Assembly: GCA_038087875.1 (NCBI GenBank)
Contig: JAXLNO010002317.1
Coordinates: forward strand, 2,294,001-2,358,000
Direction: 5' to 3'
Origin: Malacoraja senta
Taxonomy: Eukaryota
DNA length: 64,000 nt
In this document: positions 13,751 through 49,023 of the stretch, piece by piece
How the letters are laid out: the number at the start of each line of letters is the position of its first letter
Position numbering within the stretch: the stretch's first letter is position 1
Made by a program: the position numbers and the translations under genes
The notes under the pieces: model-generated
What the model was told of the DNA's origin: nothing
The model's input: the letters and a program-made list of their open reading frames with translations, nothing else
The model's database searches: none

Positions 13751-14264
13751 AAGCTTGAATTGGCCTCCACAGCCTTCTGTGGCAAAGAATTCCACAGATT
13801 CACCACCCTCTGACTAAATAAATTCCTCCTCATTTCCTTTCTAAAAGAATGTCCTTTAATTCTGAGGCTATGACCTCTCCCACCAGTGGAAATATCCTCT
13901 CCACATCCACTCTATCCAAGCCTTTCATTATTCGGTAAGTTTCATTGAGGTCCCCCCTCATTCTCGAAACTCCTGCGAGTACAGGCCCAGTGCCGTCAAA
14001 CGCTCATCATATGTAAACCCATTCATTCCTGGGACCATTCTTGTAAACCTCCTCTGGACCCTCTCCAGAGCCAGCACATCCTTCATCAGACATGGGGCTG
14101 ATAATTGCTCACAATATTCCAAGTGCGGCCTGACCAGCGCCTGAAAGAGTCTCAGCATTGCATCCATGTCGCTTAATGTATATTGGTGGCTGGAGTTTTA
14201 CTGCAATCACTTTCTCTTCCAGACCGGGAGATCGGGGCACTGACGGGATATCTGGGATCGGAAA

Positions 14265-14304
14265 ATGATCGGGAGATCGTTCTTCCTCCTCTCCCTTCTC
14301 CAAG
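14265..14304 (+). CDS. Siglec-like gene: signal peptide exon (exon 14223-14304)
   Basis: AAAATG start after in-frame upstream TGA; MIGRSFFLLSLLQ; acceptor TTTCTCTTCCAG|; donor CAAG|GTACCA in phase 1 joins V exon to give ...LLQAVMS-GQW. Confidence 0.8.
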
Positions 14305-15164
14305 GTACCATCAGCAGCAACTCAGAGGTGTTTACGGGCGAGGAGGGTTTTACTGGTTGGCTGCCAGTGACTAGCGGAGTTCCGCAGGGGTGGGTGCAGG
14401 GGCCGCTACGATCGTTTCGCTGAACACCTTTGCTCAGTCCGCCTGCACTTACCTGATCTCCCGGTTGACAAACACTTTAATTCCCCTTCCCATTCCCGCA
14501 CTGAACTTTCTGTCCTAGTTCTCCTCCACTGTCAGAGTGAGGCCAATGCAAATAAGAGGAACAGCATCTCACATTTTGCTTGGGCAGCAGACAACCCAGT
14601 GGTATGAATATTGATTTCTCTCACTTCAAGTAAACCCTGCATTCCTTCTCTCTCCATCCCTCCCCCACCCAAGTCACACCGGCTTCTCGTTCTCACCCAG
14701 CAAACAGCTAACAATGGCTTGTTTTTTTATCATCATTACTTTTTTGCAAATCTTTCATTCATTGGTTCTGTGTCTCTCTACATCATCGTCCGTCTCTCTC
14801 GTTTCCCTTTCCCGTGCCTTTCAGTCTGAAGATGGGTCTCGACCCGAAAACGTCACCCATTCCTTCTCTCTAGGGATGCTGCCTGTCGCGCTGAGTTACT
14901 CCAGATTTGTGTGTCAATCTTCAGTTTAAACCAGTATTCGCAGTTCCTTCCTGTACACCACTATTCTTCACGTTGTACATTAATGATTTGGACGAGGGGA
15001 TTGAAGGCTTTGTGGCCAAGTTTGCAGATGATACGGAAATAGGTGGAGGGGCAGGTAGTGTAGAGAAAGCAGGGACGCTGCAGAAGGATTTGGACAGGTT
15101 GGGAGAGTCGGCAGAGAAGTGGCAGATGGAATATACTGCAGCAAAGGAGGGAGCGCCGCACTGG

Positions 15165-15627
15165 TTTTTTTAATCAAAAATAATTTATTCAATTACGATT
15201 ACGATACAAAAACCAAAACAACAACAAAAACGTGGTGACACACCCTCCACCATATTACAAAATCACCAAATTATTCAGACACTAAATTTCCAAACAACTA
15301 TGGCTACAAATATACTAATAAACCACTATATAACCATGTCCCTCTCTAACACCACCCGGGCGCGGACGTAACCCTGGTAATGATGCAACCAACTGGCTCG
15401 GGCAAAGCCCTCTTCTGCCTGGCGCCGTGACTTGCAGATGGCCAGCTTGGCCAGGCCTAGGAGCAACCCAACCAGGCCATCTTCGGCCCTGCCCACTCCC
15501 TAGATCCTGTCACGAGTCCTTCAGTCGCTGACAGCAGAGTCACTCCTCCCCTACGGACCCTAGGTGGAGTGGCGATGCTCCTTGCCCTCTGGACCCTGGC
15601 TACAAGGGACGCTCTACTGGTCCCTGG
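15165..15627 (-). mobile_element. Tx1/L1-clade LINE 3' fragment
   Basis: Poly-T at ~15165 then sequence homologous to the 3' end of the element at 51180-51560. Confidence 0.75.
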
Positions 15628-16256
15628 GAGTGACGCACTGTGGGAGGGGCAGTGAGGAGGGAGTGACACACTGTGGGAGGGGCAGTAGTGGGGAGTGATG
15701 CACTGGGAGGGGCGGTGAGGAGGGAGTGACGCACTGGGAGGAGTAGTGAGGAGGGAGTGACACACTGTGGGAGGGGCGGTGAGGAGGGAGGGACGCACTG
15801 GGAGGAGTAGTGAGGAGGGAGTGATGCACTGGGAGGGGCGGTGAGGAGGGAGTGACGCACTGTGGGAGGGGCGGTGAGGAATGAGTGACACACTGGGAGG
15901 GGCGGTGAGGAGGGAGTGACGCACTGGGAGGGGCGGTGAGGAGGGAGTGACACACTGGGAGGGGCGGTGAGGAGGGAGTGACGCACTGTGGGAGGAGTAG
16001 TGAGGAGGGAGTGACGCACTGTGGGCGGGGCGGTGAGGAGGGAATGACACTGGGAAGGGCGGTGAGGGAGTGACACACTGGGAGGGGCGGTGAGGAGGGA
16101 GTGACACACTGGGAAGGGCGGTGAGGGAGTGACACACTGGGAGGGGCGGTGAGGAGGGAGTGACATACTGTGGGGGGGCGGTGAGGAGGGAGTAACGCAC
16201 TGGGAGGGACGGTGAGGAGGGAGTGACACACTGTGGGAGGGGCGGTGAGGAGGGAG
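15628..16256 (+). repeat. G-rich minisatellite, ~19 units of 30-35 bp
   Basis: Unit CACTG(TG)GGAGGGGCGGTGAGGAGGGAGTGAC(G/A); merges at its 3' end into a minus-strand SINE head (CTCTACCGCTACACCACCATGCCGC). Confidence 0.9.
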
Positions 16257-16394
16257 GCTCTACCGCTACACCACCATGCCGCTCTTCTCCGCTCTGTACA
16301 CACCAGGTCCACAGCGCAGGATAAAAGGTGTGGAAAGTGAGTCCAGTGAACTGACAGGGTGTTCACTGCTAAAGATTGTTCCTTCTCTCCTCAG

Positions 16395-16763
16395 CCGTGA
16401 TGTCGGGACAGTGGAGAGCGGACATTCCACGAGATGTGACAGCGCAGAATGGTTTGTGTGCACGGATTCCGTGTCACTACTGGTACCCGTCGCATCTGAA
16501 CAATGAATCACGGATTGGAATCTGGTTTAACAGTGGGACGCAGAACAACAAAGGTTCTGTAGCCTTCCACTCCAGGAAATCCAATCGAGAATCAACAAAG
16601 TTTCAGCATCGGACCCGGCTGTCAGGTGTCCTGAGAGACAACGACTGTTCCCTGGTTATAGACAACATCAAGCAGCAAGATGCAGGTCCTTATTATTTCA
16701 GAGTTCATTTTGGAGTGGGCGATCGTAACAGCTACCCCAATGTAACATGGCTCAGTGTTACTG
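16395..16763 (+). CDS. Siglec-like gene: N-terminal V-set Ig domain (sialic acid binding)
   Basis: 369 nt phase 1-1 exon; W near start, GLCARIPC, DCSLVI, DAGPYYFRV with essential Arg (AGA 16700-16702), NSY aromatic; CTCAG| and |GTAAGT. Confidence 0.93.
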
Positions 16764-17816: not shown

Positions 17817-18110
17817 ATTTCACAGATAAACCCACGATATTCCCTGCTGAAATGGTGGCAGGTCAGCCTGTGAACGTGACCTGCTCCTTCAACACCACGT
17901 GTGATGGAACGGCCCCCACCTTAACCTGGGTCACCCCCGCTGATGAACCACCATCAGCCTCACAAAGCGTAACACAGCGGGGAGACACTCTGACATATAC
18001 TTCTGTTCTGTCCCTGACCCCAGCGCTCAATCATCACGGGCAAAACCTCACCTGCAGAGTCACATACCCAACTGTCTCATCAGAGCAGATCCTCACAATG
18101 ACTGTGCAAT
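17817..18110 (+). CDS. Siglec-like gene: Ig domain 2 (C2-set) with inter-domain Cys
   Basis: 294 nt phase 1-1 exon; VTCSFNTTCDGTAPTLTW...HGQNLTCRV; TTAG| and |GTAAGT. Confidence 0.92.
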
Positions 18111-19165
18111 GTAAGTACGGAGATGGTTTATTGTGCAGGAACAGCAATAATCTATTAGCAGTGCTGGTACATAAGGTCATAGGCGATATGAGCAGAATTA
18201 GGCCATTCGGCCCATCATGTCTAATCTGCCATTCAAGCGTGGCTGATCTATCTCTCCTAACCCCTTCTGCCTTCTCCCCATAACCTCTGACATCCATACT
18301 AATCAAATCAACATCAAAAGCTGGAGTAACTCAGTGGGACAGGCAGCATCTCTGGAGAGAAGGAATGGGTGACGTTTCGGGTCAAGAGCGTTCTTCAGAG
18401 TGAAAGTCACGGGAAAGGGAAACGAGAGATATAGACGATGATGGAGGGAGATGTAGGACCTACCTGATCTCCCGGTTGCTAAACACTTGAATTATCCTTC
18501 CCATTCCCAAACTGACTTTTCTAGGACTCGTCCACTGTCAGAGGGAGGCTAAACCAAATTGGAGGATCAGCATCTCATATATTCGGCCGTTTACAGCCCA
18601 GTGGTATGAATATTGATTTTTCTAACTTCAGGTAGACCCGGCATTCCCTCTCTCTCCATCCCTCCTCCACCCAAGTCGCACCAGCTTCTTGTTCTCACCC
18701 AACAAACAGCTAACAATGACCTGTTTCCTTTATCATCGATAATTTTTTGCGTATCTTTCATTCTTTGTTCTATATCTCTCTACACCATTGGCTGTATCTC
18801 TCATTTCCTTAAAAATAGAAGTCGTTGCGGACTCGGTGGGCCAAAGGGTCTGTTTCCACACTGTATCTCTAAACTAACGTGTGAACGGGTGATCGATGGT
18901 CAGCGCAGACTGGGTGGGCCAAAGGGCCTGTTTCCACTCTGCATCTCTAAAGTCTAAACACTAAAGTCTTTTACAATCCAAGGGTCACGGAAGTGCCGCA
19001 AAACTGGTTGCTGAGTTTTATCTGTTTGCAGATGCCCCCCAGAATCTCTCAATGACTTCCCCCAACAACGTGAACAATTTCTGGGTCAGTATAAAGGAAG
19101 GAAACTCTGCAGCGATCCTCTGCTCCGTCCAGAGTTTCCCAACATCTAACCTGACGTGGAGACAT

Positions 19166-22053
19166 AGATACATAGATACATAGAAAATAGGTGCAGGAGT
19201 AGGGCATTCGGCCCTTCGAGCCTGCACCGCAATTCAATATGATCATGGCTGATCATCCAACTCAGTATCCCGTACCTGCCTTCTCTCCATACCCCCTGAT
19301 CCCTTTAGCCACAAGGGCCACATCTAACTCCCTCTTAAATATAGCCAATGAACTGGCTTCAACTACCCTCTGTGGCAGAGAGTTCCAGAGATTCACCACT
19401 CTCTGTGTGAAAAGGTTTTTTCTCATCTCGGTCTTAAAGTATTTCCCCCTTATCCTTAAGCTGTGACCCCTTGTCCTGGACTTCCCCAACATCGGGAACA
19501 ATCTTCCTGCATCTAGCCTGTCCAACCCCATAAGAATTTGTACGTTTCAATAAGATCCCCTCTCAATCTCCTAAATTCTAGCGAGTATAATAATAATATA
19601 ATAATAATAAGTTTATTTATATAGCACATTTTCCAATTGATTTAAATCAAAAGCCAAAGTGCTTTACAGTTACTAACCAAACAAATAATAAAAAGAGATA
19701 GAAAAAATGACAACACACTATAAGAGATTTTACACAACCACGAAGTCTATCCAGTATTTCTTCATATGAAAGTCCTGACATCCCAGAATTCAGTCTGGTG
19801 AACATTTTCTGCACTCCCTCTATGGCTATAATGTCCTTCCTCAGATTTGGAGACCAAAACTGTACGCAATACTCTAGGCGTGGTCTCACCAAGACCCTGT
19901 ACAACTGCAGTAGAACCTCCCTGCTCCTATACTCAAATCCTTTTGCTATGAAAGCTAACATACCATTTGCTTTCTTCACTGCCTGCTGCACATGCATGCC
20001 TACTTTCAATGGCTGGTGTACCATGACACCCAGGTCTCGCTGCATCTCCCCTTTTCCTAATCGGCCACCATTTAGATAATAGTCTGCTTTCCTGTTTTTG
20101 CCACCAAAGTGGATAACCTCACATTTATCCACATTATACTGCATCTGCCAAACATTTCCCCACTCACCCAGCCTATCCAAGTCACCTTGCAGTCTCCTAG
20201 CATCCTCCTCACAGCTAACACTGCCCCCCAGCTTAGTGTCATCCGCAAACTTGGAGATGTTGCCTTCAATTCCCTCATCCAGTTCATTAATATATATTGT
20301 AAATAGCTGGGGTCCCAGCACTGAGGCTTGCGGTACCCCACAGGAGCCTTGCTTCCTGTTTGCCAGCCAGTTCTCTATCCACATCAATACTGAACCCCCA
20401 ATACCGTGTGCTTTAAGTTTGTTTACTAATCTCTTATGTGGGACCTTGTCGAAAGCCTTCTGAAAGTCCAGATACAACACATCCACTGGTTCTCCCCTAT
20501 CCACTCTACTTGTTACATCCTCGAAAAATTCTATAAGATGCGTCAGACATGATTTACCTTTCGTAAATCCATGCTGACTTTGTCCAATGATTTCACCACT
20601 TTCCAAATGTGCTGCTATCCCATCTTTAATAACTGACTCTAGCAGTTTCCCCACTACCGATGTTAGACTAACTGGTCTGTAATTCCCCATTTTCTCTCTC
20701 CCTCCCTTCTTAAAAAGTAGGGTTACGTTTGCTACCCTCCAATCCTCAGGAACTACTCCAGAATCTAAAGAGTTTTGAAAAATTATCACTAATGCATCCA
20801 CTATTTCTGGAGCTACTTCCTTAAGTACTCTGGGATGCAGCCTATCTGGCCCTGGTGATTTATCGGCCTTTAATCCATTCAATTTACCCAATGCCACTTC
20901 CCGACTAACCTGGATTTCACTCAGTTCCTCCATCTCCTTTGACCCGCAGTTCCCTGCTATTTCCGGCAGATTATGTCTTCCTTAGTGAAGACGGAACCAA
21001 AGTAGTTATTCAATTGGTCCGCCATATCCTTGTTCCCCATGATCAATTCACCTGTTTCTGACTGCAAGGAACCTACATTTGTTTTAACTAATCTCTTTCT
21101 CTTCACATATCTATAAAAACTTTTGCAGTCAGTTTTTATGTTCCCTGCCAGTTTTCTTTCATAATCTATTTTCCCTTTCCTAATTAAGCCCTTTGTCCTC
21201 CTCTGCTGGTCTCTGAATTTCTCCCAGTGGTATGCTGCTTTTACTGGCTAATTTGTATGCATCATCTTTTGCTTTGATACTATCCCTGATTTCCCTTGTT
21301 ATCCACGGATGCACTACCTTCCCTGATTTATTCTTTTGCCAAACTGGGATGAACAATTTTTGTAGTTCATCCATGCAGTCTTTAAATGCCTTCCGTTGCA
21401 TATCCACCGTCAACTCTTTTAGAACTAATTGCCAGTCAATCTTGGCCAATTCACGTCTCATACCCTCAAAGTTACCTTTCTTTAAGTTCAGAACCGTTGT
21501 TTCTGAATTAACAATGTCTCACTCCATCCTAATGAAGAACTCAACCATATTATGGTCGCTCTTGCCCAAGGGGGCACGCACAACAAGACTGCTAACTAAC
21601 CCTTCCTCATTACTCAATACCCAGTCTAGAATAGCCTGCTCTCTCGTTGGTTCCTCTACATGTTGGTTTAGATAACTATCCCGCATACATTCCAAGAAAT
21701 CCTCTTCCTCAGCACCCCTGCCAATTTGATTCACCCAATCTATATGTAGATTGAAGTCACCCATTATAACTGTTTTGCCTTTGTTGCACGCATTTCTAAT
21801 TTCCTGTTTGATGCCATCCCCAACTTCACTACTACTGCTAGGTGGCCTGTACACAACACCCACCAACGTTTTCTGCCCCTTAGTGTTTCGCAGCTCTACC
21901 CATACCGATTCCACATCCTCCAAGCTAATGTCCTTCCTTTCCACTGCGTTAATCTCCTCACTAACCAGCAACGCTACCCCACCTCCTTTTCCTTTCTCTC
22001 TATCCCTCCTGAATATTGAATATCCCTGGATGTTACATCCCTGGATGTTACAT
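19166..22053 (-). mobile_element. 5'-truncated CR1 LINE (ORF2 APE + RT, frameshifted) inside exon A
   Basis: ORFs 21519..22088 (GDFNLHIDW endonuclease) and 19647..20933 (YLDFQKAFDKV, FADDTKL); tail ATCTATGT repeats; ACAT duplicated at 19162-19165 and 22050-22053. Confidence 0.93.
19590..19742 (-). mobile_element. L2-like 3' tail fragment nested in the CR1
   Basis: TAATAATAAGTTTATTTATATAGCAC...GTGCTTTACA resembles the L2 tail at 46610-46670; absent from the sister CR1 at 55720-55745. Confidence 0.6.
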
Positions 22054-24905
22054 CTCGGTATCACGCTGAACACAACACGTTCCAGCAACGAGCTGTGGAT
22101 GGTGTTCCCTCAGCTGACACGGCAGGATGCCGGGGTCTATCAGTGTGTGGCGGAGAATGAACACGGGACAGCAGAGAGGGATGTGACCCTCACTGTAGAA
22201 TGTGAGTAGACACACACTGAGACATCTCTATAAACGCAGATGGATTATTGGCCCATGAGAGATGCTGGAATTCACTACACACACTCACTCACACCTACAC
22301 ACAGTCTCCCTCTCTCACACGCACACACACACACTCTCTTACACGCACTCACTCAAACACACACACACATCAAGATCTCGGAGAAAACCCACGCAGGTCA
22401 TGGGGAGAACGTGCAAACTCCATACAGACAGGCACCGGTGGTCATGATCGAACCTGGGTCTCTAGCGCTGTAAGGCAGCAGCTCTACCCACTGCGCCACC
22501 GTGCAGCCCACATCTACAATCTTTTGTGTTCCCCACCTGTATGTAGCCCGTCTGACCTCTGCCTGACATTGTTGGATCATATTGGTCTTTCTACCCAGAA
22601 ACCCTCAATGCGTCTCAATGCTTCAAGGGAATAATGTTTAGTGCAAGAAAAAGCCAGTAAAGTCCTATCAAAGATAGCACCATAGTAATTCAGGACTGTG
22701 CTCTGGTTGTGGTGGGATGGTTCAGTTGCCTGATAACAGCTGGAAAGAAACTGTCCCTGAATCTGGAGGTGTGCGTTTTCACACTGCTGTACCTCTTGCT
22801 CGATGGGAGAGGGGAGAAGAGGGAGTGGCTGGGGAGCGACTCGTCCTTGATTTTGCTGCTGGCCTTGCCAAGGCAGCGTGAGGTGTAGATAGAGTCAACC
22901 AGCCAACATGCCCCATCTGTACTAATCCCACATGCCTGCGTTTGGCCTATATCCCTCATACCTATCCTATCCATGTACCTGTTCAACTATTTCTTAAATG
23001 CTGGGATAGTCCCAGCCTCAACTACCTCCTCCGGCAGCTTGTTCCATACACCCACCACCCTTTGTGTGGAAAAATGTTACCCCTCAGGTTCCATTAAATC
23101 TTTTCCCCTCTCCTCTTAAACATAAGTCCTCTGGTCCTCGAATCCCCTACTCTGGGCAAGAGACTTTGTGCATCTACCCGATCAATTGCTCCCAATAATT
23201 TTGCACACATCTATAAGATCACCCCTCATACGCCTGCCCTCCAAGAAATAGAGTCCCAGCCTGCCCCAATATCTCCCCGTAGCTCCTGCCTTCAATCCTG
23301 GAGAACAAGGGTAGGTGACAAAGGTCTTTTATTTACTGTTGCCCTCTTGAGTTTCATTGCCTGTATAACTTGTCATGACCTACCCCAGAGCCAACAATGG
23401 ACCATTGTGGGCTCAATGTTTTTCATGATCATCATTGCTTTTGCATATCTTTCATTCATTTGTGCCGTCGATATATCTCGTATCCCGCTCTCCGACTCTC
23501 AGTCTGAAGAAGGGTCTCGACGTGAAACGCCACCTATTATTTTTTTCCGGAGATGCTGCCTGACCCGCTGCGTTACTCCTACACTTTGTACCTGTCCGTG
23601 TTCTCCAGAGATGCTGCCTGACCCGTTGAGTTACTCCAGCACTTTGTGTCTGTCATGAATGTTTATATAGTATCTTGTTTCAATGAGAAGATAATATAGG
23701 ATCGCCTTTAGACTTCAAACAGGTAGTTCATGTTTACAAGATATAGGAATAGAATTAGGCCATTCGGCCCATCGAGTCTACTCCGCCATTCAATCATGGC
23801 TCTTTCTCCTAATCCCATTTTCCTGCCTTCTCCCCATAACCCTTGACACTTGTTCTAATCAAGAACTTGTTTATCTCTGCCTTAAAAATATCCAATGACT
23901 TGACTCCACAGCCCTTTGTGGCAATGAGTTCCACAGATTAACTACCCTCTGACTAAATAAGTTCCTTCTCACCTCCTTTCTATAAGAGCGCCATTTAATT
24001 CTGACGCTATGAGCTCTGGTGCTAGACTCTCCCACCAGTTGAAACAACCTTTCCACATCCACATGCCTTTCATTATTCTGTAAGTTTCAATGAGGTCCCC
24101 CATCCAACCTTCTAAATTCCAGTGAGTGGAGGCCCAGTGCTGTCAAGCGCTCATCATACGCTATCCCACTCATTCCTGGAATCATTCTTGTAAACCTCCT
24201 CTGGACCCTCTCCAGAGCCAGCACATCCTTCATCAGATATGGGGCCCAAATTTGCTCACAATATTCCAAATGCAGCCTGACCAGCGCCTTATGGGGCCTC
24301 AGCATTACATCTCTGTTTTTGTATTCCAGACCTCTTGATATAAATGCTAGCATTGGATTTGCCTTCCTTACTACCGATTCAACTTGCAAATTAACTTTTT
24401 GTGAGTCCTGCACCAGTACTCCCGAGTCCCTTTGCACCTCTGATTTCTGCATTCTCTCTCCATTTAGAAAATACTCTACGCCTTTACTCTTATTACCAAA
24501 ATGCATGACTCCATTCTTTGCAATACTGAATTTCATCTGCTACTTCTCTACCCACTCTCATAACCTGTCCAAAGTACTTCTGCAGAGTCCTTGCTTTCTC
24601 TATGCTATCTACCTCAGCATCATCTGCAAACTTGAGCACACAGTCTTCAATCCCCTTATCCAAATCATTAATATACAACATGAAGAGAAGTGGCCCCAGC
24701 ACCGACCCTTGAGGAACTCCACTGGACACTGGCAGCCAACATGAAAAAGCTCCTTTTATTGCAACTCTTTGCCTTCTGCCATCCAGCCAACCCGCTATCC
24801 ATGCTAGTATCTTCCCTTTAATACCATGGCCTCTCATCTTTCCCAGCAGCCTGACATACGGCACCTTATCGAGGGCCTTCTGAAAATCTAGGGAAAGAAA
24901 CATAG

Positions 24906-25196
24906 TGTAGCGTCAGCCTATACACGGGCCACTTATGCTCAAACCCTCGTCAGGAGGCACGAGGGCTGGCACGTGACGTCATGGGCTAGAGGGAGTGTCC
25001 TGGTACTTAAGGTCATCTCACCTCGAGACCTTAAGGTAGTCCACCGGTAGCTGAGCCCGAGTGAACAACCTCACTCAGCTACAGCAACAATGTTAATATA
25101 GTCAGCGCACCAACCTAACGTGTCGACCCCTGAATAAACAACTGTTTGAACTGGCCTGATGTCTCACCTTTATTCACCACGTTTGGTGCCGCTACA
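24906..25196 (+). mobile_element. Solo LTR (291 bp)
   Basis: TGTAGCG...CGCTACA termini; 4 bp TSD ATAG (24902-24905, 25197-25200); AATAAA 25133-25138; empty site at 35065-35080. Confidence 0.85.
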
Positions 25197-27517
25197 ATAG
25201 AAACATAAAAAATAGGTGCAGAAGTAGGCCATTCGGCCCTTCCAGCCAGCAACGCTATTCAATATGAACGAATACCTTAAGAATTTTATGTGTTTCTATA
25301 AGATACCCTCTCATCCTTCTAAATTCCAGTGAATGCAAGCCCAGCCATTCCATTCTTTCATCCTATGACAGTCCCGCCATCCTGGGAATTAATCTCGTGT
25401 ACCTACGCTGCCCTCCCACAATAGCAAGAATGTCCTTCCTCAAATTAGGAGACCAAAACTGCACATAATACTCCAGGTGCGGTCTCACCAGGGCCTGTAC
25501 AACTGCAATAGGAGCACCTTGCTCCTTTTCTCAAATCCTCTCGCTATGAAGGCCAACATGCCATTTGCTTTCTTCACTGCTTCATTTCATCCACAGCCAC
25601 CCCTCTGTCTGTCCTGCTATTAACTTCCTCAAAGATCTCCAGCAGATTCGTCAGGCAAGATCTTCCCTTCACAAAACCATGCTGACCGGCCCATTTTATC
25701 GTAAACATCTAAGTACTGCGTAACCTCTTCCTTTACAATTGACTCTAAAACCTTACCAACCACCGAAGTCAGGCTAACCGGCCTATAGTTTCCACTCTTC
25801 TGCTTCGCTCCCTTCTTGTTCAGCGGGACGATATTCGCAAATTTCCAATCAGCATGAACCACTCCTAACTCTAGTGATTCTTGAAATATCACAACTAATG
25901 CCTCCACAATCTCCGAGGCCACCTCCTTCAGAACCCTGGGGTGCAGTCCATCCAGTCCAGGTGACTTATCCACTCTCAGACCTTTCAGTTTTCCCAGCAC
26001 CTTCTGAGTAATCGCCACTCCACTAACTTCCACCCTGACTCTCTAGGATTGCAGGCACACTGCTGGTGTTCTCCACGGTGAGGACTGATGCAAAAAACGT
26101 TATTCAATTCCTCTTCCATTTCTTGATTTCTCCTGCACCATTCTCCCGACATCATTCGCCCAACATCCACTCTTGCCTCTATTTTTACTCTTTATATATC
26201 CGTAGAAACTCTTGCTACCCTCTTTTACATTATTGGCCAGCTTACATTCGTACTGAAGATAAGGTCGGAGAGCAGGAGGCATCACAGAGGGGGAGCAGTG
26301 AGAGAGGATGTGGCAGAACTGCATTGTTGTGAAAGATTGCATCAGGATCTTGATCGATTGGCCAGGTGAGCTGAGGAATGGTTGGTGGAGTTTAATACCG
26401 AGAAGTGTGAGATGTTGAATTTTGGGACATCTAACAAGAGCAGGACCAACACAGTTAATGGTAGGCCTCTGGGGAATGTTGAAGAGCAGAGGGATCTAGG
26501 AGTGCAGGTGCAAGGTTCCTTGAAGATCGAGTCGCAGGTAGATCAGGTGGTCAAAAAGGCTTTTGGCACATTGGCCTTCATCAGTCAGAGTATTGAATAT
26601 AGAAGTTGGGTGATCATGTTGTGTTGCATAAGACGTTGGTAAGACCGCATTTAGAATATTGTGTAAAATTCTGGGCACCATGTTATAGGAAAGATAGTGT
26701 CAAGCTTGAAATGGTTCAGAGATGATTTATGAGGATGCTGCTAGGACTAGAGGGTCTGAGCTATAGGGAGAGGTTGAGTCGGCTGGGTCTCCATTTCTTG
26801 GAGCGCAGGAGGATGAGGGGTGATCTTATAGAGGCGTGTAGATCATGAGGGGAATAGATCGGGTAGATGCACAAAATCTTTTCCCCTTCACCTTGAACCC
26901 ATGCCTAGAGTAGGGGAATCGAGGACCAGAGGACATAGATTCAAGGTGAAGGGGAAAAGATTTAATAGGAGGGGTAACTTTTTCATATAAAGGATAGTTG
27001 GTGTATGGAACAAACTGCCAGAGGAGGTAGTTGAGGCAGGGATTATCCCAGCGTTTAAGAAACAGTTAGACAGGTACATGGATAGGACAGGTTTGGAGGG
27101 ATATGGGCCATATGCGGGCAGGTGGCACTAGTGTATCTGGGACATGTTGGCCGGTGTGGGCAAATTAGGCCGAAGGACCTGTTTCCACACTATCACCCTA
27201 TGACTCCAACTCTCGTCGGAAAGAGGAAGAGAACCTCTTCAAAGTAGACATATCTTGAGGAGATTTTGCAGTGGAGCAGACGAAATGTGGAGGAAGGAAC
27301 TGCAGGTGCTGGTTTAAACCAATGATAGACACAAAGAGCTGGAGATACTCAGCTGGTCAGGCAGCATCTCTGGAGAGAAGGAATGGTTGACTTTTCGGGT
27401 CGAGACCCTTCTGCAGACTGGTTACATCCGTACTTCATCTTTTCTCTCTGTACTTTCCTGGTTGACACGTGGAATTCTGCTGTGTTAACTCACGTTTAAA
27501 CCTTTGTTTGTCTTTAG

Positions 27518-27799
27518 ATGCTCCACGGAATCTCTCAATCACTTCCCACGACGACGCGAACAGTTCCCGGGTCAGTGTAAAGGAAGGAAACTCTGCAGCG
27601 ATCCTCTGCTCCGTCCAGAGTTTCCCAACATCTAACCTGACGTGGAGACATCTCGGTGTCACGCTGAACACAACACGTTCCAGCAACGAGCTGTGGATGG
27701 AGTTCCCTCAGCTGACACGGCAGGATGCCGGGGTCTATCAGTGTGTGGCGGAGAATGAACACGGGACAGCAGAGAGGGATGTGACCCTCACTGTAGAAT
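27518..27799 (+). CDS. Siglec-like gene: C2/I-set exon B
   Basis: 282 nt phase 1-1 exon; AILCSVQSFPTSNLTW...QDAGVYQCVAENEHG; TTTAG| and |GTGAGT. Confidence 0.9.
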
Positions 27800-30469: not shown

Positions 30470-30860
30470 ATGTGAGGGGTGATCGTGGTCTACGCGGACT
30501 TGGTGGGCCGCTGGTCCTGTTTCCGCGCTGTATCTCTAAACAACATAGAAATCGCGTGAACGGGTGATCGGTGGTCAGCGTGGACACGATGGGCCGAAGG
30601 TCCTGTTTCCGCGCTGTATCTCTAACTAAACAAAGAACTATTGTGTGAACAGATGATCGATGGTCGGTGCGGACTCGGTGGGCCTGTTTCCGCGCTGTAT
30701 CTCTTAAAAAAAGCCTCTGTTTCTTTAGAACACAGACTGTCCCGTGGGTATCTCTAAACTAAACAGAACTAGCGTGTGAACGGGTGATCGATGGTCGGTG
30801 CGGACTGGGTGGACCGAAGGGCCTGTTTCCGCGCTGTATCTCTAAAGTCTAAAGACTAAA
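30470..30860 (+). repeat. Tandem array of SINE/CR1 3' tails at the duplication junction
   Basis: About five ~85 bp units directly upstream of the exon A' acceptor region; a shorter array lies upstream of exon A. Confidence 0.7.
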
Positions 30861-30927
30861 GTGTTTTACAATCCAAGGATCACCGAAAGTGCCACAAAAC
30901 ATGTTGCTGAATTTTATCTGTTTGCAG

Positions 30928-31209
30928 ACGCTCCCCAGAATCTCTCAATCACTTCCCCCAACAACGTGAACAATTCCTGGGTCAGTCTAAAGGAAGGAAA
31001 CTCTGCAGCGATCCTCTGCTCCGTCCAGAGTTTCCCAGCGTCTAACCTGACGTGGAGACATCTTGGTATCACGCTGAACACAACACGTTCCAGCAACGAG
31101 CTGTGGATGGAGTTCCCTCAGCTGACACGGCAGGAAGCCGGGGTCTATCAGTGTGTGGCGGAGAATGAACACGGGACAGCAGAGAGGGATGTGACCCTCA
31201 CTGTAGAAT
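30928..31209 (+). CDS. Siglec-like gene: C2/I-set exon A'
   Basis: 282 nt intact phase 1-1 exon; TTTGCAG| and |GTGAGT; QEAGVYQC. Confidence 0.9.
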
Positions 31210-34600: not shown

Positions 34601-37600
34601 ATTCGGTCCTTTGAGCCTGCACCGCCATTCAATATGATCATGGCTGATCATCCAATTCAGTATCCTGTACCTGCCTTCTCTCCATACCCCCTGATCTCTT
34701 TAGCCACAAGGGCCACATCTAACTCCCTCTTAAATATAGCCAATGAACTGGCCTCAACCACCTCCTGTGGCAGAGAATTCCACAGTTTCACCACTCTCTG
34801 TGTGAAAAATGATTTTCTCATATCGGTCCTAAATGACTTCCCCCTTATCCTTAAACTGTGACCCCTTGTTCTGGACTTCCCCAACATCGGGAACAATCTT
34901 CCTGCATCTAGCCTGTCCAACCCCTTAAGAATTTTGTAAGTTTCTATAAGATCCCCCCTCCATATCCATGCTAGTATCTTCCCTTTAATACCATGGCCTC
35001 TCATCTTCCCTAGCAGCCTGACATACGGCACCTTATCAACGACCTTCTGAAAATCTAGGGAAAGAAACATAGAAACATAAAAAATAGGTGCAGGAGTAGG
35101 CCATTTGGCCCTTCCAGCCAGCACAGCCATTCAATGTGGTCACGGTTATTTTTCCAAAATCAGTGCCCCGTTCCTGCTTTCTCCCCATATCCCTTGATTC
35201 CGTTAGCCCTAAGAGCTAAATTTAACTCTCTTGAAAGCATCCAGCGAATTCGCCTCCACTGCCTTCTGTGACAGAGATTTCCACAGATTCACAACTCTCT
35301 GGGTGAAAAGGTTTTTCATCTCAGTCCTAAATGGCTGACCCCTTATTCTTAAACTGTGACCCCTGGTTCTGGACCCCCACCAACATCAGGAATATTTTTC
35401 CTGCATCTAGCCTGTCCAATCCCTTAAGAGTTTTATATGTTTCTATAAGATCCCCTCTCATCCTTCTAAATTCCAGTGAATACAAGCCCAGTCGATCCAT
35501 TCTTTCATCCTATGACAGTCCTCCATCCAGGGAATTAACCTGGTGAACCTACGCTGCACTCCCTCAATAGCAAGAATGTCCTTCCTCAAATTAGGTGACC
35601 ATAACTGCACACAAGACTCCAGATGCGGTCTCACCAGGGCCCTGTACAACTGCAATAGGACCACCTTGCTCCTTTTCTCAAATCCTCTCGCTATGAAGGC
35701 CAACATGCCATTTGCTTTCTTCACTGCTTTCTTTCATCCACAGCCACCAGGACATTGTCAATACCAGTACATTGTCAAGCGATGTCCTGGTATTAACTTC
35801 CTCAAAGAACTCCAGCAGATTCATCAGGCAAGATCTTCCCTTCACAAAACCATGCTGACCGGCCATTTTATCGTGAACATCTAAGTACTGCGTAACCTCT
35901 TCCTTTACAATTGACTCTAAAATCTTACCAACCACCGAAGTCAGGCTAACCATCCTACAATTTCCGCTCTTCTGCTTCGCTCCCTTCTTGTTCAGCGGGA
36001 CGATATTCGCAAATTTCCAATCATCATGAACCACTCCTGACTCTAGTGATTCTTGAAATATCACAACTAATGCCTCCACAAGCTCCGAGGCCAACTCCTT
36101 CAGAACCCTGGGGTGCAGTCCATCCAGTCCAGGTGACTTATCTGCTCTCAGACCTTTCAGTTTTCCCAGCACCTTCTCCTTAGTAATCACCACTCCACTA
36201 ACTTCCACCCCTGGCTCTCTAGGATTGCAGGCACACTGCTGGTGTCCCCACGGTGAGGACTGATGCAAAAAAGTTATTCAATTCCTCTTCCATTTCTTGA
36301 TTTCTCCTGCACCATTCTCCGACATAATTCGCCCAACATCCACTCTTGCCTCCTTTTTTACTCTTTATATATCCGTAGAAACTCTTGCTATCCTCTTTTA
36401 CATTATTGGCCAGCTTACATTCGTACTGAAGATAGACACAAAAAAGCTGAACTAATTCAACGGGACAGGCAGCATCTCTGGAGAGAAGGAACAGGCGACG
36501 TTTCGGATCGAGACCCTTCTTCAGACTGGTTAGGGATAAGGTAAACAATGGATACAGACGATGATGTCGAGAGATAAAGAACAATGAATGTAAAGTCCGA
36601 GAGCAGGAGGCATCACAGAGGGGGAGCAGTGAGAGAGGATGTGGCAGAACTGCATTGTTGTGAAAGATTGCATCAGGATCTTGATCGATTGGCCAGATGA
36701 GCTGAGAATGGTTGGTGGAGTTTAATACCGAGAAGTGTGAGATTTTGGACTTCTAACAAGAGCAGGACCTACACAGTTAATGGTAGGCTTCTGGGGGATG
36801 TTGAAGAGCAGAGGGATCTAGGAGTGCAGGTGCAAGGTTCCTTGAAGATCGAGTCACAGGTAGATCAGGTGGTCAAAAAGGCTTTTGGCACATTGGCCTT
36901 CATCAGTCAGAGTATTGAGTATAGAAGTTGGGTGATCATGTTGCAGTTGTATCAGACGATGGTAAGACCATATTTAGAATATTGTGTAAAGTCTGGGCAC
37001 CATGTTATAGGAAAGATATTGTTAAGCGTGAAATGGTTCAGAGAAGATTTATGAGGATGCTGCCAAGACTAGAGGGTCTGAGCTATAGGGAGAGGTTGAG
37101 TAGGCTGGGTCTCTATTCCTTGGAGCACAGGAGGATGAGGGGTGATCTTATAGAGGTGTATAGATCATGAGGGGAATAGATCGGATAGATGCACAGAGTC
37201 TCTTGCCCAGAGTAGGGGAATCGAGGACCAGAGGACATAGGTTCAAGGTGAAGGGGAAAAGATTTAATAGGAATCTGAGGGGTGACTTTTTCATACAAAG
37301 GATAGTTGGTGTATGGAACAAGCTGCCAGAGGAGGTAGTTGAGGCAGGGACTATCCCAATGTTTAAGAAACAGTTTAACAGGTACATGGATAGGACAAGT
37401 TTGGAGGGATATGGGCCAATGCGGGCAGGTAGGACTAGTGTATCTGGGACATGTTGGCCAGTGAGGGCAAGTTGGGCAGAAGGGCCTGTTTCCACACTAT
37501 CACCCTATGACTCTAACTCTTGCCAGAGAGAGGAGGAGAACTTCTTCAAAGTAGATATACCTTGAGTAGATTTTGCAGTGGAGCAGACAAAATGTGTAGG

Positions 37601-37729
37601 AAGGAACTGCAGATGCTGGTTTAAACCGAAGATAGACACAAAAAGCTGGAGTAACTCAGTGGGCCAGACAGCATCTCTGGAGTTAACCTCATTTACTTGA
37701 GGTTAATGAGCCATTAGGAGGCAGTCAGG

Positions 37730-40140
37730 TCAGGTTTAATCTACAATTGGAGAGGGAGGAGGATAGATTGGAGGTGTCAGTGTTATAGTTGAATAAAGGG
37801 GACTGGGGCCATGAGGGAGGAGCTGGCTAAAGTTGACTGGAAAGATACCCGAGCAGGGATGACAGTGGAGCAACAATGGCAGGTATTTCTCAGAATAATA
37901 CAGAAGGTGCAGGATCAGTTCATTCCTAGGAGGAAGAAAGATTCCAAGGGGAGGAACGGGCGACCGTGACTGACAAGGGACGTCAGGGACAGTATAAAAA
38001 TTAAAGAGAAGAAGTACAATGTAGCAAAGATGAGCGGGAAGCAAGAGGATTGGGTAATGTTTAAAGAGCAACAGAAGATAACTAAAAAGACAATACGGGG
38101 AGAAAAGATGAGATACGAAGGTAAGCTAGCCAAGTATATAAAGCAGGATAGTAAAAGCTTCTTTAGGTATGTGAAGAGGAAAAAATTAGTTAAGACCAAA
38201 ATTGGACCCTTGAAGACCGAAAAAGGTGAATTTGTTATGGGGAACAAGGAAATGGCAGATGAGTTGAGCAGGTACTTTGGATCCGTCTTCCCTAAGGAGG
38301 ACACAAACAATCTTCCTGATATAGTAGTGGCCAGAGGATCTGGGGTGACGGAGGAACTGAAGGAAATCCACATTAGGCAGAAATGGTGTTGGATAGACTG
38401 ATGGGACTGAAGGCTGATAAATCCCCAGGACCTGATGGTCTGCATCCCAGGGTACTTAAGGAAATGGCTCCAGAAATCATTGGTGATAATTTTCCAATGT
38501 TCTATAGACTCAGGATCAGTTCCTGTGGATTGAAGGGTAGCTAATGTTATCCCACTTTTAAGAAAGGCGCGAGAGAGAAACATGGTATTATAGACCAGTT
38601 AGCCTGACATCCCTGCCACAGAGGGCAGTGGAGGCTAAGTCACTGGATGGATTTAAGAGAGAGTTACTGTAGATAGAGCTCTAGGGGCTAGTGGAATCAA
38701 GGGATATGGGGAGAAGGCAGGCACGGGTTATTGATAGGGGACGATCAGCCATGATCACAATGAATGGCGGTGCTGGCTCAAGGGCCGAATGGCCTCCTGC
38801 ACCTATTTTCTATGTTTCTATGACATCGGTGGTGGGGAAGATGCTGGAGTCAATTATAAAAGATGAAATAGCCGCACATTTGGATAGCAGTAACAGGATT
38901 CAGCATGGATTTATGAAGGGGAAATCATGCTTGACTAATCTTCTGCAAACTTTTGAGGATGTAACTAGGAAAATGGACAAGGGAGAGCCAGTGGATGTAG
39001 TGTACCTGGACTTTCAGAAAGCGTTTGATAAGGTCCCACATAGGAGATTAGTGGGCACAATTAGGGCACATGGTATTGGGGGTAGAGTGCAGACATGGAT
39101 AGAAAATTGGTTGGCAGACAGGAAACAAAGAGTAGGGATTAACGGGTCCCTTTCAGAATGGCAGGCAGTAACTAGTGGGGTACCGCAAGGCTCGGTGCTG
39201 GGACCGCAGCTATTTACAATGTACATCAATGATTTGGATGAAGGGATTCAAAGTAACATTAGCAAGTTTGCAGATGACACAAAGCTGGGTGGCAGTGTGA
39301 ACTGTGTGGAGGATGCTATGAGAATGCAAGGTGACTTGGACTGGTTGGGGGTGTGGGCAGATGCATGGCAGATACAGTTTAATGTGGATAAATATGAGGT
39401 TATCCACTTTGGTATCAAAAACAGGAAGGCAGATTACTATCTAAATGGTGTCAATTTGGGACAAGGGGAAGTACAACGGGATCTGGGGGTCCTTGTACAT
39501 CAGTCTATGAAAGTAAGCATGAAGGTACAGCAGGCCGTGAAGAAAGCGAATGGCATGTTGGCCTTTATAACAAGAGGAGTCGAGTATAGGAGCAAAGAGG
39601 TCCTTCTGCAGTTGTACAGGGCCCTAGTGAGACCACACCTGGAGTATTGTGTGCAATTTTGCTCCCCTAATTTGAGAAAGGATATTCTTGCTATTGAGGG
39701 AGTGCAGCGTAGGTTTACAAGGTTAATTCCCGGGGTGGCGGGACAGTCATGCTGAGAGAATGGAGTGGCTGGGCTTGTACACTCTGGAGTTTAGAAGGAT
39801 GAGAGGGTATCTTATTGAAACATTAGATTGTTAAGGGTTTGGACACGCTAGAGGCAGGAAACATGTTCCCGATGTTGTGGGTGTCCAGAACCAGGAGCCA
39901 CAGTTTAAGAATAAGGGGTAAGCCATTTAGAACGGAGACGAGGAAACACTTTTTCTCACAGAGAGTTATGAGTGTGGAATTCTTTGCCTCAGAGGGCGGT
40001 GGAGGCCAGTTCTCTGGATACTTTCAAGAGAGAGCTAGATAGGGCTCTTAAAGATAGCGGAGTCAGGGGATATGGGGAGAAGGCAGGAATGGGGTACTGT
40101 TTGGGGATGATCAACCATGATCACATTGAATGGCCAACTT
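37730..40140 (+). mobile_element. Decayed CR1 LINE ORF2 with a CR1 3' tail inserted at ~38600-38820
   Basis: ORFs 38030..38401 and 38691..39755 (YLDFQKAFDKVPH, FADDTKLGG); absent from unit 1. Confidence 0.85.
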
Positions 40141-40315
40141 CTGCACCTGTTGTCTATTGACTATTGTCTATTGAGAGTAGGAATGGGTGACGTTTCAGGT
40201 TGAGACCCTTCTTCAGGCTGGTTACATTCGTACTTCATCTTTTCTCTCCGTATTGTCCTGTTTGAAACGTGGAATTCTGCCGTGTGAACACGTTTAAACA
40301 TTTGTTTGTCTTTAG

Positions 40316-40597
40316 ATGCTCCACAGAATCTCTCAATCACTTTCCACGACGACGCGAACAGTTCCCGGGTCAGTATAAAGGAAGGAAACTCTGCGGCGAT
40401 CCTCTGCTCCATCCAGAGTTTCCCAACATCTAACCTGACGTGGAGACATCTCGGTTTCACGCTGAACACAACACGTTCCACCAACGAGCTGTGGATGGAG
40501 TTCCCTCAGCTGACACGGCAGGAAGCCGGGGTCTATCAGTGTGTGGCGGAGAATGAACACGGGACAGCAGAGAGGGATGTGACCCTCACTGTAGAAT
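40316..40597 (+). CDS. Siglec-like gene: C2/I-set exon B'
   Basis: 282 nt intact phase 1-1 exon; 8 nt differences from exon B. Confidence 0.9.
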
Positions 40598-42189
40598 GTG
40601 AGTAGACACACACTGACACATCCCTCAAAACACCATAAGGTCATAAGTGATAGGAGCAGAATTAGATTGCCGAATGACCAAGTCTACTCCGCCATTCAAT
40701 CATGGCTGATCTATCTCTCCCTCCTAACCCCATTCTCCTGCCTTCTCATTGAGCCATAGAGTTATAGAGCCATAAAGTCATAGTGATAGAGAGTCGTAGA
40801 GTGATACAGTGTGGAAACAAGCCCTTCGGCTCAACTTACTTTCAACAGCCTACATGTCTCAGGTATATTAGTCCCACCTGCCCACATTTGGCCCATATCC
40901 CTCCAAACCTGTCCTATCCATGTACCTGTCTGTTTCTTAAACACTGGGTAGACCCTGCCTCAACTACCTCCTCTGGCAGCTCGTTTCATACACCAACTAC
41001 CCTTTGTATGAAAACGCCACCACCTATATACCTATTAAATGTTTTCCCCTTTACCTTAAACCTATGTCCTCTGGTCCTCGATTCACTTACTCTGGGCAAG
41101 GGACTCTGTGCGTCTACCCGATCTATTCCTCTCATGATTTTATACACCTCTATAAGATCACCCCTCATCCTCCTGCGCTGCAAGGAATAGAGTCCCAGCC
41201 TGCTCAACCTCTCCCTATTGCTCAGGGCCTCAATTTCTGGCTACATCCTCGTAAATCTTCTCTGTACCCTTTCCTGCTTGACAACATCTTTCCTATATTT
41301 CCTCTCTCCTCTTCTAAGATGAGGAAGATTAGATCAAGTTATTTGAAGCATTGTGTGCAGTTCTGGTCACCCCATTACAGGAAGGATGTGGCCAGGGTGC
41401 AGAATGCTGCCTGGATTAGAGAGTATTAGCAATAAGGAGTTTTAAGGAGGGCTCAGTGGTTCAACGGTAGAGTTGCTGCCTCACAGCACCAGAGAGCCGG
41501 GTTCGATCATGACTACTGGTGCTTGTCTGTCGGGAGTTTGTAAGTTCACCTCATGACCTGTGTGGGTTTTCTCCAGATGCTCCGGTTTCCTCCCACACTC
41601 AAATCGGACAGGTTTGTAGGTTAATTGACTTGGTATATTTGTAAATTGTCCCTAGTGTGTGTGGGATAGTGTAAGTGTGCGGGGATCGTTGGTCGGCGCG
41701 GACATGGTGGGCCGAAGGGCATATTTACTTGCTTTATCTCTAAACTAAACTAAACTAAAGAGGTTGGAAAGATTTGTATTGTTTTCTATGGAGTTCATAA
41801 GGTCATAAGTAAAAGGAGCAGAATTAGGCCATTCGGCCCATCATGTCTACTCCGCCATTCAATCATGGCTGATCTATCTCTCCCTCCTAACCCCATTCTC
41901 CTATCTTCCCATAACCCTTGACACCCGTACTAATCAATAATCTATCTATCTCTGCCTTAAATATATCCACTGACTTGGTCTCTGCCGCCGTCTGTGGCAA
42001 TGAATTCCACAGATTCACCACCCAGTTCAAAGGCTGAGGGGAGACCTGATAGAAATATATAAAACTATGAGATGCATAGAGAAGGTAGACAGTCAGAATC
42101 TTTTTCCCATGGTGCAAATGTCAAAGTTGAGAGGGCAGAGCTTTAAGGTGAGAGGGGAAAACCGTAAAGGTGATGTGTGGGGCAAGTTT

Positions 42190-43291: not shown

Positions 43292-43585
43292 ATGCGCCAG
43301 AGATTTCCTGGGATTCGGGATGCACTCGCACACCTGAGAGTGTCACCTGTGTGTGTGCGGCCAGGTGCAACCCACCCGGAGAGCTCACCTGGCGCCTCCC
43401 CCTCGCCAACCTCAGCGGAAACCAAACCCGCGGACGTCCCCACACATGGCAGGTGGCCGGCGGGCATCTGGTGAATGGCTCCTTCACCCTGAGAGGGGGT
43501 GATGGAGGGGAAGACGTGACGGCCTTGTGCTCAGTCCGAAACCGACACGGGGAAGCCTTGTTCACGGTGTATCTGTCGATGGAAG
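43292..43585 (+). CDS. Siglec-like gene: membrane-proximal MAG-domain-5-like Ig domain
   Basis: 294 nt phase 1-1 exon; YAPEISWDSGC...VTCVCAARCNPPGELTW...LTLRG...ALCSVRNRHG has the C-x8-CxC-x4-NP pattern of MAG D5; TCTCCAG| and |GTGAGG. Confidence 0.88.
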
Positions 43586-45039: not shown

Positions 45040-45136
45040 GTAAGAGCTTCAGTATTTGGATCGTAGTTTTGCTTACAGCAGGGATAATACTGATCGCTGA
45101 GCTTGCTGGATTCTTCATCTACAAGTATATACAGCG
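45040..45136 (+). CDS. Siglec-like gene: transmembrane exon
   Basis: GKSFSIWIVVLLTAGIILIAELAGFFIYKYIQR; TTCTTACAG| and CG|GTAAGT (phase 1 in, phase 2 out). Confidence 0.88.
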
Positions 45137-47410: not shown

Positions 47411-47890
47411 TAGTGAGTTGATTTGGAGAGTGAAAGGCTTTGAGAGAGTGGATGTAGAGAGGATGTTTCCACTAGTGGGAGAGTCTCGGACCAGAGGTCA
47501 TAGCCTCAGAATTAATGATCCTTCCTTTTGGAAGCAGATGAGAGGAATTTCTTTAGTCAGAGGGTGGTGAATCTGTGGAATTCTTTGCCGCAGAAGGCTG
47601 TCGATGCCAAGTCAATGGATATTTTTAAGGCAGAGATAGATATATTCTTGATTAGTACGGGTTTCAGGGTTTATGGGGAGATGGCAGGAGAATGGGGTTA
47701 GGAGGGAGAGTTAGATCAGCCATGATTGAATGGTGGAGTAGACTTGATGGGCCGAATGGCTTAATTCTACTCCCATCATTAATGACCGCATGATCTTATG
47801 ACCAACGTCTAATACAACTGCAACTTTGTACTTGGACTTTGCTGATGTGCAGATGTGCTGTAAATTTGGTGTGATCTTCTGTTGCTCCAG

Positions 47891-47972
47891 GAGGGAAGAT
47901 GTGACAACGGAGAAGGCTTCAGGAAACCAAGATACAAATGTGATCTACTGCCCACACTCTGCCACCAATCAG
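47891..47972 (+). CDS. Siglec-like gene: first cytoplasmic exon
   Basis: Unique island; CTCCAG| acceptor; phase 2 in, phase 0 out; (R)REDVTTEKASGNQDTNVIYCPHSATNQ; donor CAG|GTAGTG is fairly weak. Confidence 0.7.
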
Positions 47973-48529
47973 GTAGTGGAACTCTGCATTTAATCTCAAC
48001 TACAGATACAAAAGTGGGCACAAAAAGCTGGAGTAACTCAGCAGGACAGGCAGCATCTCTGGAGGTACATGGATAGGACGGGTTTGGAGGGATATGGACC
48101 AAGCGCAGGCAGGTGGGACCAGTGCAGCTGGGACATGTTGGCCGGTGTGGGCAAGTTGGGCCGAAGGACTTGTTTCCACACTGTATCACTATGACTCTAT
48201 ATGGACGATAATGTAGAGAGATAAAGAACAATGAATGAAAGATATGCAAATATAGTAACGATAATAAAGGAAGCAGGCCACTGTTAGCGGTTTGTTGGTT
48301 GAAAATGAGAAGCTAGTGCGGCTTGGGTGGGGGAGGGATGGAAAGAGAGAGAAATCAATGTGCATATCACTGGGCTGTAAGCTGCACAAGTGAAATATGA
48401 GATGCTGTTCCTCCAATTTGCATTTAGGCCTCACTCTGACAATGGAAGAGACCGAGGACAGAAAGGTCAGTGTGAGAATGGGAAGGAGAATTAAAGTGTA
48501 CAGCAACCGGGGTATGAATATTGATTTCT

Positions 48530-48690
48530 CTGTGTGAGTGGGAGAGAGAGAGAGAGTGGGTGTGAGTGTGAGAGAAAGTTTGAGAGAGGGAGACAGTGCG
48601 AGAGGGGGAGAGAGTGTGAAACTGCAAGTGTGAGAGAGTGTGTGAGTGTGTGAGAGAAAGAGAGGAGAGAGAGAGAGTGTGAGAGGAGAA
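48530..48690. repeat. (GA)n/(GT)n mixed microsatellite; a (CA)/(CT) tract also at 22275-22370
   Basis: Direct reading. Confidence 0.9.
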
Positions 48691-48832
48691 CATAAACAAC
48701 ATGCCTGAACCTGGGTGTGTGGGAGTTCAGGAGTTGTGAACCTTGTCGCTGATGGTAATTAAATGTCAGGCCACACCGTGCACTGCTCTGTACTAAACCC
48801 ACAACTGCCCGTCTGCTTCCCTTTCCTTCCAG

Positions 48833-49023
48833 AGCGCGGGGAGTGGAGAGGACGGGCCGGCCCCAGAGGAGCTGAAAGGAGGAGGGGAACCGGAGAGGGG
48901 GAAGAGCGAGCGGTCGTGTACGCCAGCCTGCGGGAGTTGCCGAGCAGCGGAGACACTGTGCACAACGGCGAGGGGGTGGAATACGCTGAGCTCTGGTTCC
49001 AGTCCAAGCAGGGGGAGGGGTAG
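48833..49023 (+). CDS. Siglec-like gene: terminal cytoplasmic exon with two ITIMs (VVYASL, VEYAEL); frame conflict at G5 run 48897-48901
   Basis: TACTAAAC branch-like motif, CTTTCCTTCCAG| acceptor; Tyr codons 48919-48921 and 48982-48984; stop TAG 49021-49023. Confidence 0.75.

Follow-up and report, generated by a model that had tools for sequence, protein, structure and literature searches.

How does a receptor of the sialic-acid-binding Siglec family change the length of the stalk beneath its lectin domain? This question is raised by a Siglec gene of the skate Malacoraja senta, which lies in a 64,000-nucleotide (nt) stretch of contig JAXLNO010002317.1 (GenBank assembly GCA_038087875.1, forward-strand positions 2,294,001 to 2,358,000); we refer to this whole stretch as the window and use its numbering unless another locus is named. 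An initial annotation of the window had described a receptor lengthened by internal duplication of an exon pair. From our analysis we consider it probable that the gene belongs to a Siglec family of sharks and rays, that an old duplication of one exon pair (A-B) lengthened it independently of events in the skate Amblyraja radiata, and that two lesions followed.

The window contains one plus-strand gene, extending from 14265 to 49023, with its exons in the order leader, V, C2, A, B, A', B', D5, transmembrane (TM) and two cytoplasmic exons (the first designated cyt1). All exons have canonical AG/GT splice sites, all immunoglobulin (Ig) exons are of phase 1-1, and each of the four I-set exons (A, B, A' and B') is 282 nt long, confirming the exon order and Ig exon phases given by the initial annotation. 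Because every I-set exon has this length and these phases, any number of them splices in frame, which makes stalk length a free variable. The cyt1 exon was not obvious in the sequence and was located by tblastn with the tails of homologues. The exons, with amino acid (aa) identities to the Amblyraja orthologue described below and with the two tyrosine motifs of the tail, one an immunoreceptor tyrosine-based inhibitory motif (ITIM), are as follows.

14265..14304, plus strand: leader exon, from the ATG to a phase-1 donor, encoding MIGRSFFLLSLLQ
16395..16763, plus strand: V-set exon, with the YYFR arginine motif and the C..IPC and DCSL cysteines
17817..18110, plus strand: C2-set exon (domain 2), phase 1-1, Pfam C2-set_2 at 2.9e-10, 88.5% aa identity to the orthologue
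19032..19165, plus strand: 5' half of exon A (I-set, A type), acceptor intact, frame open until an insertion point
22054..22201, plus strand: 3' half of exon A, donor intact
27518..27799, plus strand: exon B (I-set, B type), 282 nt, phase 1-1, Pfam I-set at 3.1e-13
30928..31209, plus strand: exon A' (I-set, A type), intact
40316..40597, plus strand: exon B' (I-set, B type), intact
43292..43585, plus strand: D5, the membrane-proximal Ig exon, 92% aa identity to the orthologue
45040..45136, plus strand: TM exon, ending in phase 2, 84% aa identity to the orthologue
47891..47972, plus strand: cyt1, phase 2 in and phase 0 out, 89% aa identity to the orthologue
48833..49023, plus strand: last exon, with VVYASL (ITIM) and VEYAEL (second motif) in the DNA, displaced from the reading frame by one base

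Exons A-B and A'-B' had been assigned to two colinear units, and self-comparison of the window recovered both, together with an assembly gap and a long interspersed nuclear element (LINE) fragment that belong to the second unit.

18872..29307, plus strand: duplication unit 1 (exons A and B), colinear with unit 2 by blastn (88-95% identity)
30767..42067, plus strand: duplication unit 2 (exons A' and B'), from the self-comparison with unit 1
31542..31670, no strand: assembly gap (a run of N), intronic, 333 nt past the A' donor
37683..40166, plus strand: LINE fragment found in unit 2 only, in the intron just upstream of B', RVT_1 at 2.1e-26, breaking the alignment between the units

A and A' are 11.9 kb apart, and B and B' 12.8 kb. 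Although the I-set exons of the window are 94-97% alike overall, their first 60 nt distinguish two types, A and B, and pair A with A' and B with B'. Nucleotide identity is 96.5% between A and A' (10 differing sites) and 97.2% between B and B' (8 differing sites), and the intron sequence around B and B' has a Jukes-Cantor (JC) distance of 0.106 over 1362 sites. Each unit carries a private LINE of ~2.5-2.9 kb, which is antisense and within exon A in unit 1 and in sense orientation at 37683-40166 in unit 2. With identity of no more than 88-95% between the units and a LINE insertion peculiar to each, the duplication is not an assembly artefact.

Two haplotypes joined in the assembly, a danger that the initial annotation had itself raised, or mis-scaffolding over the run of N could in principle create such a repeat, and it is true that the gap lies inside unit 2 and that the contigs of a DNA sequencing run, X1, are too short to bridge the unit junction. 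We give this explanation very little credence. The units differ by 5-12% and in further indels in addition to their private LINEs, the exon pairs differ at the 10 and 8 sites given above, and two joined haplotypes would not show such intron divergence together with private LINEs, so we rejected it. The gap itself is flanked by inverted 101-nt arms resembling a short interspersed nuclear element (31432-31532 and 31717-31817), and on either side of it the sequence is colinear both with unit 1 and with the Amblyraja orthologue, in which the matching interval holds no Ig exon. As the gap is also intronic, it affects neither exon order nor reading frame.

To place the duplication in time, we compared the window with Amblyraja radiata. 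The closest protein is P0213 of this species (a 'Siglec-12' XP model), and its locus, L001, is the positional orthologue of the window gene, with the same leader, the same minisatellite ahead of the V exon and introns 86-92% alike. The leader exon DNA is 95% alike between the two loci, and the leader peptide MIGRSFFLLSLLQ is identical to the N-termini of the annotated skate paralogues P0267, P0276 and P0203. Besides the D5 (92%) and TM (84%) identities listed above, the single I-set domain of P0213 is 88-90% identical to B and A', and the tails are near-identical, their conserved C-terminal 38 residues sharing 87% aa identity. Around an A-B1-B2 array (A type at 14949, B types at 19217 and 24054 of L001), the orthologue has V, C2, D5, TM, cyt1 and tail; it differs from the window gene in this array, in its intact exon A, in its in-frame ITIMs and in its V domain. 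The shared minisatellite is a 31-nt G-rich repeat of ~20 copies (15626-16256) in the intron just before the V exon of the window; in Amblyraja it has the same position and is longer (L001 about 8243-9857). The NCBI model P0213 skips the leader and two of the three I-set exons and leaves out 41 residues from a C2 exon that looks intact (L001 13682-13969), and such omissions make protein-based domain counts in the chondrichthyan Siglec family unreliable.

Since both skates have A and B types with type-specific flanks, their ancestor would have had five domains, V-C2-A-B-D5, and five Ig domains are the likely starting state, in agreement with the base layout that the initial annotation had proposed. 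The JC distance of 0.106 between the introns of B and B' compares with 0.11-0.12 between the window and Amblyraja and with 0.071 between Amblyraja B1 and B2. Because the introns of the two units thus differ by ~10%, nearly as much as those of the two skate species, the duplication is old: by this measure it is nearly as old as the split from Amblyraja, and it is probably not a young polymorphism. Informative intron sites divide 34 : 5 : 3 in favor of grouping by species, and independent duplications in the two skates, of the A-B pair in the window lineage and of B alone in Amblyraja, are thereby supported. A four-exon array ancestral to both skates, from which Amblyraja lost A' in a contraction that would replace two expansions, could account for the near equality of the B-B' and between-species distances if the duplication slightly predated the split. 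This alternative is improbable, however, given the grouping of intron sites by species, the B1-B2 distance of only 0.071, and the absence of any remnant of an A-type exon or its flanks between B1 and B2 in L001.

We propose the following history, which starts from an ancestral V-C2-A-B-D5 gene. In the lineage of the window skate, a tandem A-B duplication of ~11 kb lengthened this gene, possibly through unequal recombination in its repeat-rich introns, and Amblyraja separately duplicated the B exon alone. Later, a LINE split exon A, leaving at most six Ig exons by predicted in-frame skipping, and one base was lost ahead of the ITIMs. The layout of the predicted receptor is a V-set lectin domain with the canonical arginine, a C2 domain, a run of I-set spacers, a MAG-d5-like domain, a TM segment and a tail that, in the orthologue, contains an ITIM and a second ITIM-type motif.

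The claim that this receptor is a chondrichthyan Siglec was borne out by its V domain. Among PDB sequences the V domain matched MAG best (1.2e-13), followed by CD33, Siglec-5, Siglec-10, sialoadhesin, Siglec-8 and Siglec-7; the top 17 sequences were all Siglecs, and the next were JAML (2e-7) and pIgR (3e-5). In Pfam, the V exon matched V-set at 1.5e-11 and Ig_CD22 at 1.7e-7. An arginine in strand F of Siglecs (Y-x-F-R) is essential and binds the carboxylate of sialic acid. The YYFR of the window aligns column for column with YYFR of MAG and YFFR of CD33, and the orthologue has YFFR. The V segments GLCARIPC and DCSL align with GTCVSIPC and NCTL of MAG, which is the Siglec cysteine pattern (C-x-x-I-P-C in strand B and a C in strand E), and domain 2 contains NVTC...TTC, which fits the extra Siglec cysteine; the corresponding disulfide bonds are predicted. 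The I-set exons matched MAG d3/d4 and Siglec-8 d3 in the PDB, and MAG d5 (8e-9) was the sole match of D5 below E 0.001 (the next was axonin-1 at 0.008), which supports the MAG-like placement of this domain in the initial annotation.

An exhaustive search with the V domain found 23 cluster representatives below 1e-30; those that we looked up were all from sharks, rays and skates, and NCBI's pipeline had named these relatives Siglec-5/8/10/12/13, MAG-like, CD22-like and similar. We also built the Siglec phylogeny that the initial annotation had suggested as a check, as a quick V+C2 tree with long branches and without human sequences. In this tree the chondrichthyan proteins formed one clade (Shimodaira-Hasegawa-like approximate likelihood ratio test support 99), with the skates nested in the batoids and separate shark MAG/SMP-like genes outside it; the chondrichthyan clade (99), a tetrapod group (95) and the shark SMP/MAG-like pair met in an unordered three-way split. 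On the evidence of these comparisons, the gene belongs to a large Siglec clade of sharks and rays whose members are known from automatic annotation alone, and among the open-access papers searched we found none that describes chondrichthyan Siglecs beyond passing mention.

The first of the two lesions is an insertion into exon A.

19166..22053, minus strand: LINE, antisense in exon A, 2888 nt, RVT_1 at 1.9e-29 and Exo_endo_phos_2 at 2e-12

The endonuclease and reverse-transcriptase open reading frames (ORFs) of this element are interrupted by frame breaks, its 3' end resembles a microsatellite, and a 4-nt sequence (ACAT) may represent a target duplication; the element is 96-98% alike to a copy at 55306-56334. 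It cuts exon A between the codons for H and L, whereas the orthologous Amblyraja exon A is intact. The split exon leaves six usable Ig exons, the number that the initial annotation had expected after exon loss.

The second lesion is in the last exon, where a GGG run of the orthologue is GG in the window at about 48891 (region 48885-48895), putting both tyrosine motifs out of frame. The orthologue's last exon reads SAGSG...KGGGES-GEGEE..VYANL, and the window follows it until the missing G. As assembled, the window thus has no in-frame pair of an ITIM and an ITIM-like motif, while the ITIMs are in frame in Amblyraja. The initial annotation had called the receptor an immune one; with both ITIMs displaced by the single base, an inhibitory immune function of the window copy is uncertain. 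With exon A skipped and the first AG used as acceptor, the ORF extends to 782 aa. Use of a second AG, 2 nt further downstream (48833-48834), is predicted to restore the ITIM frame and give a product of 736 aa.

Comparison with the orthologue yielded a dN/dS (ratio of nonsynonymous to synonymous substitution rates) of 0.29-0.42 for C2, D5 and TM+cyt1 and of 1.68 for V, in which dS was 0.106, about the intron divergence. The former values indicate that the gene worked for most of its history, and the latter suggests diversifying selection on the lectin domain. The V exon (16395-16763 against L001 9998-10360) has only 69% protein identity to the orthologue, and the other exons have 84-97%. The I-set exons combine a low proportion of synonymous differences (pS 0.015-0.09) with a ratio of nonsynonymous to synonymous proportions (pN/pS) near 1, both within and between species. 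Their last ~200 nt are almost invariant in all seven I-set copies of the two species, at an intron divergence of 0.07-0.12. We did not adopt within-species gene conversion as the sole cause of this near-identity, because the exons are equally similar between species.

The LINE split and the one-base loss imply either a copy in early decay or a six-domain protein with a changed tail, and with two damaging lesions the window copy may be decaying. Could it instead encode a fully working six-Ig inhibitory receptor, if exon A is skipped and the missing base is an error of assembly or is circumvented by use of the second AG? In favor of this, the remaining exons have open frames and canonical sites, C2, D5 and TM have been under purifying selection, strand-biased RNA reads fall on exons B and A', the alternative AG leads to an ORF that ends at the conserved stop after both motifs, and the difference amounts to one G in a short G run. 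Yet splicing in the orthologue is at the first AG, giving SAGSG..., a reading that the window shares until the lost base; the second AG, being GAG, is a weak acceptor; and we found no protein model of the gene. We regard a fully working receptor as unlikely, though well short of far-fetched.

Several observations weigh against the history of duplication and later damage proposed here. The breakpoints of the units could not be defined, because interspersed repeats form a mosaic at their junction (29307-30767); gene conversion across the introns could give the appearance of independent duplications; and the one-base loss could be an assembly error. Further points concern expression, for which we aligned reads of three RNA runs (X34, X31 and X27) and the DNA run X1 to 27300-31500. 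In X34 the depth was about 8 on exon B and about 2.6 on A', mostly with the first mate on the minus strand; it was lower in X31, so that these two runs together ranged over about 2-8 reads, and zero in X27, and bins of unique intron sequence were near zero. The B-to-A' joint was not among the joints listed for this interval, where repeat-derived reads dominated and cover was thin, and the few reads on B and A' could come from paralogues. Searches with Mobula and Amblyraja homologues found no protein of the window gene in the databases searched. Only about 6% of the words of the V exon were present in the Logan RNA contigs, and when short transcript-derived proteins were searched with exon A', a white-shark fragment was the only match.

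Because no transcript bridging B and A' was seen, one might propose two separate genes, a truncated V-C2-A-B and a headless A'-B'-D5-TM. However, the interval between B and A' lacks a leader, V, TM or terminal exon, with nothing but repeat fragments at 29307-30767, and homologues with four I-set domains in a single protein exist. On these grounds we rejected the two-gene explanation, to which we attach almost no probability, and retain a single gene with a duplicated exon pair.

Three further features of the locus are recorded here. D5 has a second phase-1 donor at 43630, 45 nt downstream of the first, which would add 15 stalk residues (EDISGGGKSSSHSHG) and is the one used in the Amblyraja gene model. 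The predicted TM helix contains a Glu (IAELAG, 45088-45096) that is kept in the orthologue and is odd for an ITIM-type receptor. Downstream of the gene, a 42-nt tandem repeat array (56578-56973) lies within long overlapping ORFs and looks like repeat, not coding sequence.

Variation in stalk length extends across the family. Annotated relatives carry 1, 2, 3, 4, 5 or 8 such I-set domains, counts that come from gene models and are lower bounds, as P0213 uses only one of three genomic I-set exons. In one protein of the bamboo shark Chiloscyllium, d1 pairs with d3 and d2 with d4, the same pattern of pair duplication; Mobula birostris has four domains and M. hypostoma five, of which the last two are identical; and I-set domains cluster by lineage. 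The range from 1 to 8 domains suggests that stalk length is a labile trait in the chondrichthyan Siglec clade. The initial annotation had held that the stalk expands and contracts by unequal crossover: the changes in length stand (A-B-B in Amblyraja, four against five domains in Mobula, Chiloscyllium, and the range of 1 to 8), and unequal crossover is a presumed mechanism for the window gene.

Among known systems, MAG (Siglec-4, 5LF5) shares with the skate gene the best V match with its aligned arginine, the correspondence of the I-set exons to d3/d4 and of D5 to d5, and the five-domain layout of the gene's presumed ancestral form. The skate gene is nevertheless not a MAG orthologue. Whereas MAG orthologues are single conserved genes with five domains and no ITIM, the chondrichthyan clade forms a large multigene family: each species has dozens of paralogues, the tails contain ITIMs, the V domain evolves fast, and the number of domains varies. 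Sharks also have separate MAG/SMP-like genes outside the clade. The CD33-related Siglecs of tetrapods (for example CD33, Siglec-5 and Siglec-10; PDB matches at 1e-11 to 1e-12) resemble the clade in the V-set arginine, rapid change of V, many paralogues, and a tail with an ITIM and a membrane-distal motif, as seen in the Amblyraja orthologue. They are also alike in frequent pseudogenes and gene conversion, which are typical of primate CD33-related Siglecs (PMC6288428). In contrast to these, the chondrichthyan clade stands apart from the tetrapod group, in the three-way split with MAG/SMP described above, its D5 is MAG-d5-like, and a repeated, near-identical I-set exon is the source of its variable domain number. 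The event itself resembles the tandem duplication of an IgV-IgC exon pair that produced 4Ig-B7-H3 (PMC3172298), as both are immune Ig receptors in which a two-exon Ig cassette was duplicated in tandem, in frame and in some lineages only; unlike the skate gene, 4Ig-B7-H3 belongs to the B7 family, has a V-C cassette rather than two I-set spacers, and has no lectin domain.

The mechanism proposed here is an ordinary one, the family is poorly described but already annotated, and damage and unproven expression reduce the value of the window copy. The locus is still a clean, dated example of a change in ectodomain length of an Ig-superfamily lectin by means of a symmetric-phase exon cassette, and two related skates have different solutions, A-B-A'-B' and A-B-B. 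More tentatively, and with somewhat less than even confidence, we propose that the Siglec clade of cartilaginous fishes evolves as the primate CD33-related Siglecs do, with a positively selected V domain and frequent gene death, and that in addition its stalk is repeatedly retuned by gain or loss of a nearly invariant 282-nt, phase 1-1 I-set exon or exon pair, possibly with copy number varying within species. If this is true, the reach of these receptors, and with it the balance of cis and trans binding, would itself be an evolving trait.

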